NCBI RefSeq assembly: GCF_964194025.1
Contig: NC_134473.1
Coordinates: 51,894,001 to 51,958,000, forward strand
DNA from: Convolutriloba macropyga
Lineage: Eukaryota
Reading direction: 5' to 3'
Length of the DNA: 64,000 nt
Of the stretch, positions 5,746-6,325 are shown piece after piece (position 1 is the first letter of the stretch; each line of letters opens with the position of its first letter). The position numbers and the translations under genes were made by a program. The notes under the pieces were generated by a model. That model was not told the DNA's origin and did not search any database. It worked only from the letters and a program-made list of their open reading frames with translations.

Positions 5746-5946
5746 CGCGTGGGGAAAACAAGGAGTGCTACTGCTGAACCCAGTTCTCACGGTCAGAAAA
5801 GGTGTACCCAATTCACATGAAGGCAAAGGGTGGGAGGAGGTCACAGCAGAAGCTATCAAAGCTGTGGATAACAAAGAGGAACCCGTTGTGTTCATGCTGT
5901 GGGGCGAGAAGGCGAAATTGATGAAGGCACTCATCAAAAATAAGAG
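5746..5946 (+). CDS. UNG: Uracil-DNA glycosylase paralog A, penultimate exon
   Basis: Translates as (S)AWGKQGVLLLNPVLTVRKGVPNSHEGKGWEEVT...[12 protein letters not shown], with the family-1 UDG motifs QGVLLLN, SHxxxGWE and VFMLWG. AG acceptor at 5744-5745. Same length (201 nt) as exon 2 of copy B. The 3' boundary assumes a GA donor. Earlier exon(s) presumably lie upstream of the window. Confidence 0.9.
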
Positions 5947-6183
5947 GAATGTTGTTAACAATCAAACCCGCTTTTGAATCCAATGAGCATGTAATATTAT
6001 CAAGCACAATTAGTTTACATTCAAGTACAGACCCCAGTGTTATAATATGTTGGGCAAAAATTGCAACTAAAATCACGTCATGCTAGCAGGAACTGGACGA
6101 ACAGCCTCAGAGCAACTTTAGCAGGGAATATACATTTAGCAGGGAAAAGTAAATGCTTGGTTGTTAACTGACACTGAATTCAG

Positions 6184-6325
6184 GCACAAAATTCTCGAGA
6201 CCTCTCATCCGTCGCCTAACTTTGGAGCAGCCCAAAAGGGCTTTCTGGGCTGCGGTCACTTCAAACAGGCCAACGATTTCTTGGCTGAAAATGGATTTGA
6301 ATCAATCTATTGGTGTTGTCTTTGA
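6184..6325 (+). CDS. UNG: Uracil-DNA glycosylase paralog A, last exon
   Basis: After a CAG acceptor: (R)HKILETSHPSPNFGAAQKGFLGCGHFKQANDFLAENGFESIYWCCL*, with HPSP and GFxGCxHFxxAN motifs. Stop TGA at 6323-6325. Not in the ORF track. Confidence 0.9.

Follow-up and report, generated by a model that had tools for sequence, protein, structure and literature searches.

Two UNG-like genes and their inverted duplicate

The stretch of DNA analysed here, hereafter the window, is 64 kb long and matches Convolutriloba macropyga chromosome OZ077304.1 (GCA_964194025.3) at 100% identity from ~51,894,001; among protein representatives, the first large exon of copy B (introduced below) likewise hit a RefSeq protein of this species at 100%. 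Its + strand carries two tandem UNG-like genes (family-1 uracil-DNA glycosylase), which we designate copies A and B, and no further UNG exons were found in the 64-kb window beyond those of A and B. Copy A is represented inside the window by its last two exons, 5746-5946 and 6184-6325; exon 1 falls beyond the edge of the window, ~9.5 kb upstream of exon 2. The A-B locus is present twice on the same chromosome, the second time ~350 kb away, inverted and 90-94% identical (OZ077304.1 51,510,071-51,544,839, reversed; record L082), where it carries the genes A' and B'. The features of the window discussed below are the following, a slash in a sequence marking an exon-intron boundary.

5746-5946, + strand: copy A penultimate exon, S117-K183 of XP_075247985.1, plus the AG of a split Arg codon
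5945-5966, + strand: donor block AG/GAATG..., 22 nt, identical in A, A', B and B'
5947-6183, + strand: predicted copy A intron 2, 237 nt, GA..AG
5950-5965, + strand: 5' arm of the copy A helix, core 5954-5965, with a 10-nt palindrome inside
6157-6173, + strand: 3' arm of the copy A helix, ending 10 nt before the acceptor AG, with branch-point-like TTAAC and CTGAC
6184-6325, + strand: copy A last exon, g + HKILETSHPSP...CCL + TGA
10087-10424, + strand: copy B exon 1, ATG at 10087, TAG at codon 10, GQDPYP motif
10425-12425, + strand: copy B intron 1, canonical, CAG/GTTATT ... AAG/T
12426-12626, + strand: copy B penultimate exon
12627-28637, + strand: copy B homologue of the predicted GA..AG intron, 16,011 nt, enlarged by transposon insertions
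12634-12644, + strand: 5' arm of the copy B helix, forming 11 Watson-Crick pairs with 28608-28618
17385-23588, - strand: BEL/Pao-type LTR retroelement ORFs in the copy B intron (integrase, Peptidase_A17 + RT, DUF1759)
28608-28618, + strand: 3' arm of the copy B helix, ending 19 nt before the acceptor AG
28638-28779, + strand: copy B last exon, a + HKVLTTSHPSP...CKF + TGA

The domain PF03167 is listed for these UNG genes, and the GQDPY-type, GVLLLN and HPSP histidine motifs were all found. In the active-site loop of both copies (10267-10284 in B), GQDPYP replaces the usual GQDPYH. Following HPSP (6206-6240 in A; 28660-28694 in B), copy A reads HPSPNFGAA and copy B HPSPQHGAA, with two extra residues, and the Leu finger that directly follows HPSP (HPSPLS) is missing in both. 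A bacterial origin by horizontal transfer, suggested by the best score of the penultimate exon, which falls on a Deinococcus UNG, was rejected because exon 1 scores best against the cod and human UNGs.

The first introns of both copies start conventionally. The exon 1 donor of copy A reads GT, since the read-through ORF P0326 (...HGDL-RFNSS) needs AG/GTTC after the exon, and at the site of the canonical intron 1 of copy B the public B' proteins join HGDL-S-AWAQQ.

The second locus may have arisen by segmental duplication, or it may be a haplotype that the assembly left uncollapsed. Both forms of the locus occur in the contigs of runs X3 and X4, which derive from one sample, and only the form of the window in those of X1 and X2. 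Variants in the read contigs that had looked allelic were reassigned to the paralogous locus A'. Comparing the copies, B carries a TAG at codon 10 (10114-10116) where B' has TCG, whereas in B' a TGG has become TGA within the FMLWG motif (L082 ~12506-12508); as the nonsense mutations differ, B and B' were hit independently. In the last two exons, all four changes between A and A' are non-synonymous, and one of them gives A' a Pro for a Leu immediately ahead of the HPSP motif. Of the four copies, only A in the window has no evident defect.

The GA..AG junction and the UNG reading frame

In copy A, the penultimate exon ends ...AAG AG at 5946 and is followed by GA at 5947; the AG that closes the predicted intron lies at 6183, and the coding sequence resumes with g + CAC from 6184. 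Similarly, copy B has the same donor context, AG/GAATGTTG, at 12626/12627, an acceptor AG at 28636-28637 and an exon from 28638. The acceptors read TTCAG/G in A and AACAG/A in B, both with a normal AG and both in phase 2, so that the last exons begin in phase 2 after CAG exactly as the original prediction had read them. The same GA..AG intron can be recognized in both genes of the second locus, and an exonic AG before the donor together with an A at +3 (AG/GAA) is found in A, A', B and B'.

The position of this junction is set by comparison with UNGs of solved structure. By phmmer, residues 2-63 of the copy A exon align with residues 114-175 of cod UNG and the first His of the last exon corresponds to residue 180, so the split AG+G codon (Arg) fills residue 179 and leaves no gap. 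A gap-free join against the solved UNGs is obtained only if A loses 5947-6183 or B loses 12627-28637, in agreement with the prediction that an insertion-free UNG needs donors at 5947 and 12627. UNGs from fish, bacteria and metagenomes likewise align with the joined protein without any gap. In copy B, an in-frame TAA had been proposed to fix the acceptor from six codons upstream; the TAA is present at 28615-28617, with no other AG before 28636, but it precedes the split codon by seven codons rather than six. In all other coordinates and sequence details, the original prediction proved accurate. Each junction carries a copy of AG(G), so the boundary may formally slide by up to 2-3 nt, as had been anticipated. 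In the DNA contigs, the copy A intron is spanned unchanged at the depth of its single-copy flanks, and a 5946/6184 joint was absent from the contigs of the four DNA-like sequencing runs that hold the stretch.

We then searched the public proteins for the peptides of the penultimate and last exons, taking each separately. The 230-aa protein XP_075247985.1 corresponds to copy A: the penultimate-exon peptide occupies amino acids 118-183 and the last-exon peptide 185-230, with a single Arg at 184 between them. From this layout it follows that the public CDS omits exactly 5947-6183, giving the join KNKR/HKIL. The protein of A' at the second locus, XP_075247972.1, has the same join position (KNKR/HKIP). 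The RefSeq join in the copy A model may come from protein homology rather than from RNA. With the same join in the RefSeq proteins of A and A' and an identical donor context in all four copies, the GA..AG interpretation put forward in the original prediction is supported.

The public models of the B genes take other routes. That of copy B, XP_075248386.1, has an improvised five-codon start exon (MICAE, 6340-6354) and continues across the GA donor as far as a stop, and the three public isoforms of B' use a GT donor inside the exon, which skirts the TGA and leaves the GA donor unused. The independent nonsense mutations in B and B' explain why these public models were improvised. Given the TAG at codon 10 and a public model that reads through the donor, we infer the junction of copy B from past constraint only. 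More generally, gene finders limited to GT or GC donors will mis-model genes of this genome, as the public copy B models illustrate.

Taking these results together with the sequence features described in the next section, the best overall explanation is that 5947-6183 would be a real spliceosomal intron of an UNG-like gene, with a GA donor, a normal AG acceptor and, possibly, help from a helix between its ends; we assign this reading a probability of roughly 0.75. The sequence layout, the UNG collinearity, the public CDS and the conservation are shown; removal of the intron in vivo and the type of spliceosome involved we infer.

One could suppose that the stretch is not spliced at all, in which case decaying duplicates retain it and end at the in-frame stop that follows ...KNKRNVVNNQTRF, and the RefSeq join is a homology artefact. 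The TAG at codon 10 of B and the TGA in the FMLWG motif of B' fit such decay, as do the exclusively non-synonymous differences between A and A', with their Leu to Pro change before HPSP, and the passage of the RefSeq model of B through the donor. However, the copy A of the window shows no such defect, and A and B diverge with a dN/dS of 0.34 at a dS of 0.73, the last exon included, with 47% of their synonymous sites different. Moreover, the last exons of B and B' differ by four synonymous and no non-synonymous changes. The dN/dS and this 4:0 pattern indicate that the last exon was read in frame until recently. A truncated product would also lack the HPSP histidine, which is invariant in the UNG alignment, and the protein search turned up no other UNG of C. 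macropyga. We regard retention of the stretch as quite improbable.

The donor block and the paired intron ends

The donor block is the longest run of identity between A and B, reaching 22 nt, whereas no such run in the last exon exceeds 16, and within the window it occurs only at the two UNG donors (0.01 occurrences expected). Beyond +20, the introns of A and B cannot be aligned. By a rough estimate, the chance that 20 neutral bases remain unchanged at a synonymous difference of 47% is ~3e-6. The first 20 bases of the intron, which pair with its 3' end, thus evolve more slowly than the coding exons. These 20 nt are also an open frame (NVVNNQ) that is identical in A and B; it is unlikely that the conservation stems from coding constraint in a retained-intron product.

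The same open frame is at the centre of another explanation, in which splicing is canonical, the protein carries an extra loop and the conserved 20 nt are coding (RNVVNNQ). In-frame, stop-free canonical pairs do exist. In copy A, GT at 5951/5954 can be joined to AG at 6140/6143, adding 15-17 aa, and in copy B the donors that can be joined to 28638 are GT 12687 (+20 aa), GC 12654 (+9 aa) and GT 12588 (-13 aa). The identity of NVVNNQ in A and B would suit a coding role, and the site is where the alignment with solved UNGs is interrupted, between one exon segment and the next; from the general UNG fold, we take it to be a surface loop that might tolerate an insertion. However, the peptides that A and B would gain show no relationship to each other, and the listing of splice sites bears out the earlier remark that the canonical alternatives are not homologous between the copies. 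A', which differs in length by 62 nt, has thereby lost the AGs at 6140/6143 and would need a different insert of ~35 aa, so the alternative available to A is not conserved even in its near-identical duplicate. RefSeq uses these sites in neither A nor A', the third-codon positions of the block are all fixed despite the 47% synonymous difference, and the 3' arm in B lies behind the in-frame TAA and cannot be coding. A protein with an extra loop appears quite improbable on this evidence, and we return to the GA..AG intron.

From +4/+8 onward, the donor block is complementary to sequence near the 3' end of the intron, 10-19 nt short of the acceptor. Neither these paired ends nor the second locus had been noticed in the original prediction. 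In copy A, the helix comprises 12 contiguous pairs including one G-U (5954-5965 with 6157-6168), or 16 pairs with a bulge, and in copy B 11 Watson-Crick pairs; the inverted repeats of the two copies begin 3-7 nt inside the 5' end and not at the very termini. Random pairs of 40- and 50-nt windows reach at least 11 pairs in 0.34% of cases. The 3' arms of A and B differ at one position, where U-A becomes U-G, and no double compensatory change was found in the A/B helix arms. The energy of the helix is unexceptional, being matched by shuffles in 1.4-3.3% of trials; the fold of the whole intron gives z = +1.0, and other windows of the 16-kb intron of B pair better with its 5' end. The similarity of the 3' arms between A and B is marginal, since shuffles reach it in 208 of 5000 trials (~0.04) and real control windows in 13 of 395, and it could reflect a branch-point motif instead. 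We regard the end helix itself as real. That it has a function we hold at about even odds.

If the helix is functional, it would hold the weak GA donor beside the branch and acceptor region and so help to define the splice sites. The donor AG/GAAUGU keeps the non-GU contacts expected with U1 and U6, namely A-2, G-1, G+1, A+3, G+5 and U+6, and a U2-type intron is most likely. The helix probably goes back to the insertion of an inverted repeat, part of which selection has retained. A broader proposal, that the non-GT introns of this acoel are a functional class whose end helix is under selection and partly replaces GU in splice-site definition, is tentative and rather doubtful at present. If true, the UNG paralogues would show a helix and a 20-nt 5' element under purifying selection over ~0.7 substitutions per synonymous site.

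The same ends bear on whether something other than the major spliceosome removes the stretch, either the U12-type machinery or a structure-guided excision resembling that of euglenids. The U12 branch consensus is TCCTTAAC and the U12 donor consensus RTATCCTT. TTGTTAAC, 15-19 nt from the acceptor, comes near the former, and the 5' element is unusually long and conserved; GAATGTTG, by comparison, fits the donor consensus at only ~4 of 8 positions. The donor retains the U1-type positions -2, -1, +1, +3, +5 and +6 and the acceptor is an ordinary AG, both of which speak for the major spliceosome. Paired ends are shared with the non-conventional introns of euglenids (PMC11282704), but the euglenid register, +4..+6 with -8..-6, is not found here, as 10-19 nt separate the helix from the 3' end. 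Removal by a route other than the major spliceosome is very improbable.

Origin of the intron and comparison with known systems

The predicted GA..AG intron does not coincide with the intron found near this site in vertebrate-like UNG genes. Seven ORFs derived from vertebrate-like UNG exons stop after the residue homologous to human IDR and continue with Val (GTN). One of them could be read at the DNA level as aac cgc/gttagt, a phase-0 GT donor; the acoel site lies 5 nt downstream and in phase 2. A vertebrate-like UNG exon (Logan SRR31175904 contig, L001 3020-3215) has introns at Q/GVLLLN and INR/gttagt, and relative to vertebrate-like UNG the upstream intron of the acoel genes is displaced by six codons. 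These shifted positions indicate that both acoel UNG introns are lineage-specific.

Both ends of the intron contain, on their inner side, an 8-nt direct repeat, TTGTTAAC, which cannot be distinguished from an inverted repeat because it overlaps the palindrome. We rejected a reading of TTGTTAAC as the trace of a piggyBac (TTAA) or hAT (8-bp TSD) element, as the adjoining ends form no proper terminal repeats. A search for a repeat family behind the intron gave no further copies of the end blocks in the window, with intron A at single-copy depth, and no known RNA family of Rfam was matched in the window.

A GT at the start of the intron is among the most fixed signals of eukaryotic genes, and few animal lineages, among them Eurytemora and the larvacean tunicates, are known to depart from it routinely. 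The original prediction had pointed to GA donors in Oikopleura and Eurytemora, and these are indeed reported: the GA-AG introns of Eurytemora affinis and Oikopleura dioica have an AG/GA-A context (Frey & Pucker 2020, PMC7072748), and in both species they are described as frequent and RNA-supported (Robertson 2017, as cited in PMC7072748). Like those introns, the UNG intron has a donor GA after an exonic AG, an A at +3 and a normal AG acceptor. It differs from them in belonging to the phylum Acoela, in the conservation of 20 intron bases between old paralogues and in the pairing of its ends, a feature that PMC7072748 does not report for the two species.

Non-canonical introns with terminal inverted repeats are known from Fritillaria borealis (Henriet 2019; PMC13326754), from Amoebophrya and from the Micromonas-type introners (review PMC11282704). 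In Fritillaria, AG-AC and AG-AT are the usual boundaries, the 3' ends are non-canonical and U2AF is duplicated (PMC13326754), and the non-canonical introns are lineage-specific (PMC11282704). Like such transposon-derived introns, the UNG intron has inverted-repeat ends, an AG repeat at its junctions and a lineage-specific position. Unlike the introns of Fritillaria, it has an AG acceptor, and no multi-copy element family was seen within the window.

With regard to the pairing, two other systems offer comparisons. The non-conventional introns of euglenids combine paired ends (+4..+6 with -8..-6) and TSD-like repeats with the lack of an AG acceptor and a circular product (PMC11282704). The ends of the UNG intron are similarly brought together by pairing and the AG(G) repeated at its junctions may be a TSD-like repeat, whereas its pairing register and its acceptor do not match those of euglenids. 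In yeast, zipper stems pair the donor and branch regions and thereby aid spliceosome assembly, the known examples having canonical GU donors. Like these stems, the UNG helix would bring the 5' splice site effectively closer to the branch and 3' region; unlike them, it accompanies a GA donor, and in copy B it would have to span 16 kb.

GA-AG introns and non-canonical introns with inverted-repeat ends are thus both known kinds. Our literature search for non-canonical splicing in acoels or Xenacoelomorpha gave no relevant paper. To the known kinds, the UNG locus adds a candidate acoel GA-AG case that combines gene-model support with conservation between old paralogues, and it makes testable the question of whether end-to-end pairing compensates for a missing GU.

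Transposable elements and other repeats are abundant around the two genes. The stretch that holds the BEL/Pao ORFs in the intron of copy B (~17146-26576) is without counterpart in B', which carries a different insert of ~6.6 kb in the homologous intron. Intron 1 of copy A contains a 2.86-kb tandem direct repeat whose units are ~98% identical (window 11-2758 and 2775-5635). Very high-copy repeats occupy 6900-8100 and 10500-11300, where the summed contig depth exceeds that of the flanks by a factor of hundreds to thousands; the latter repeat sits in intron 1 of copy B and holds reiterated CATACTAGGT-type units. Directly downstream of copy B lies a fragment of a non-LTR retrotransposon with endonuclease and reverse transcriptase (30258-32707, + strand), followed by a run of N, an assembly gap or masked sequence, at 36622-36967, and by a tandem duplication with a period of ~3.8 kb that comprises 38844-41368 and 42671-45360.
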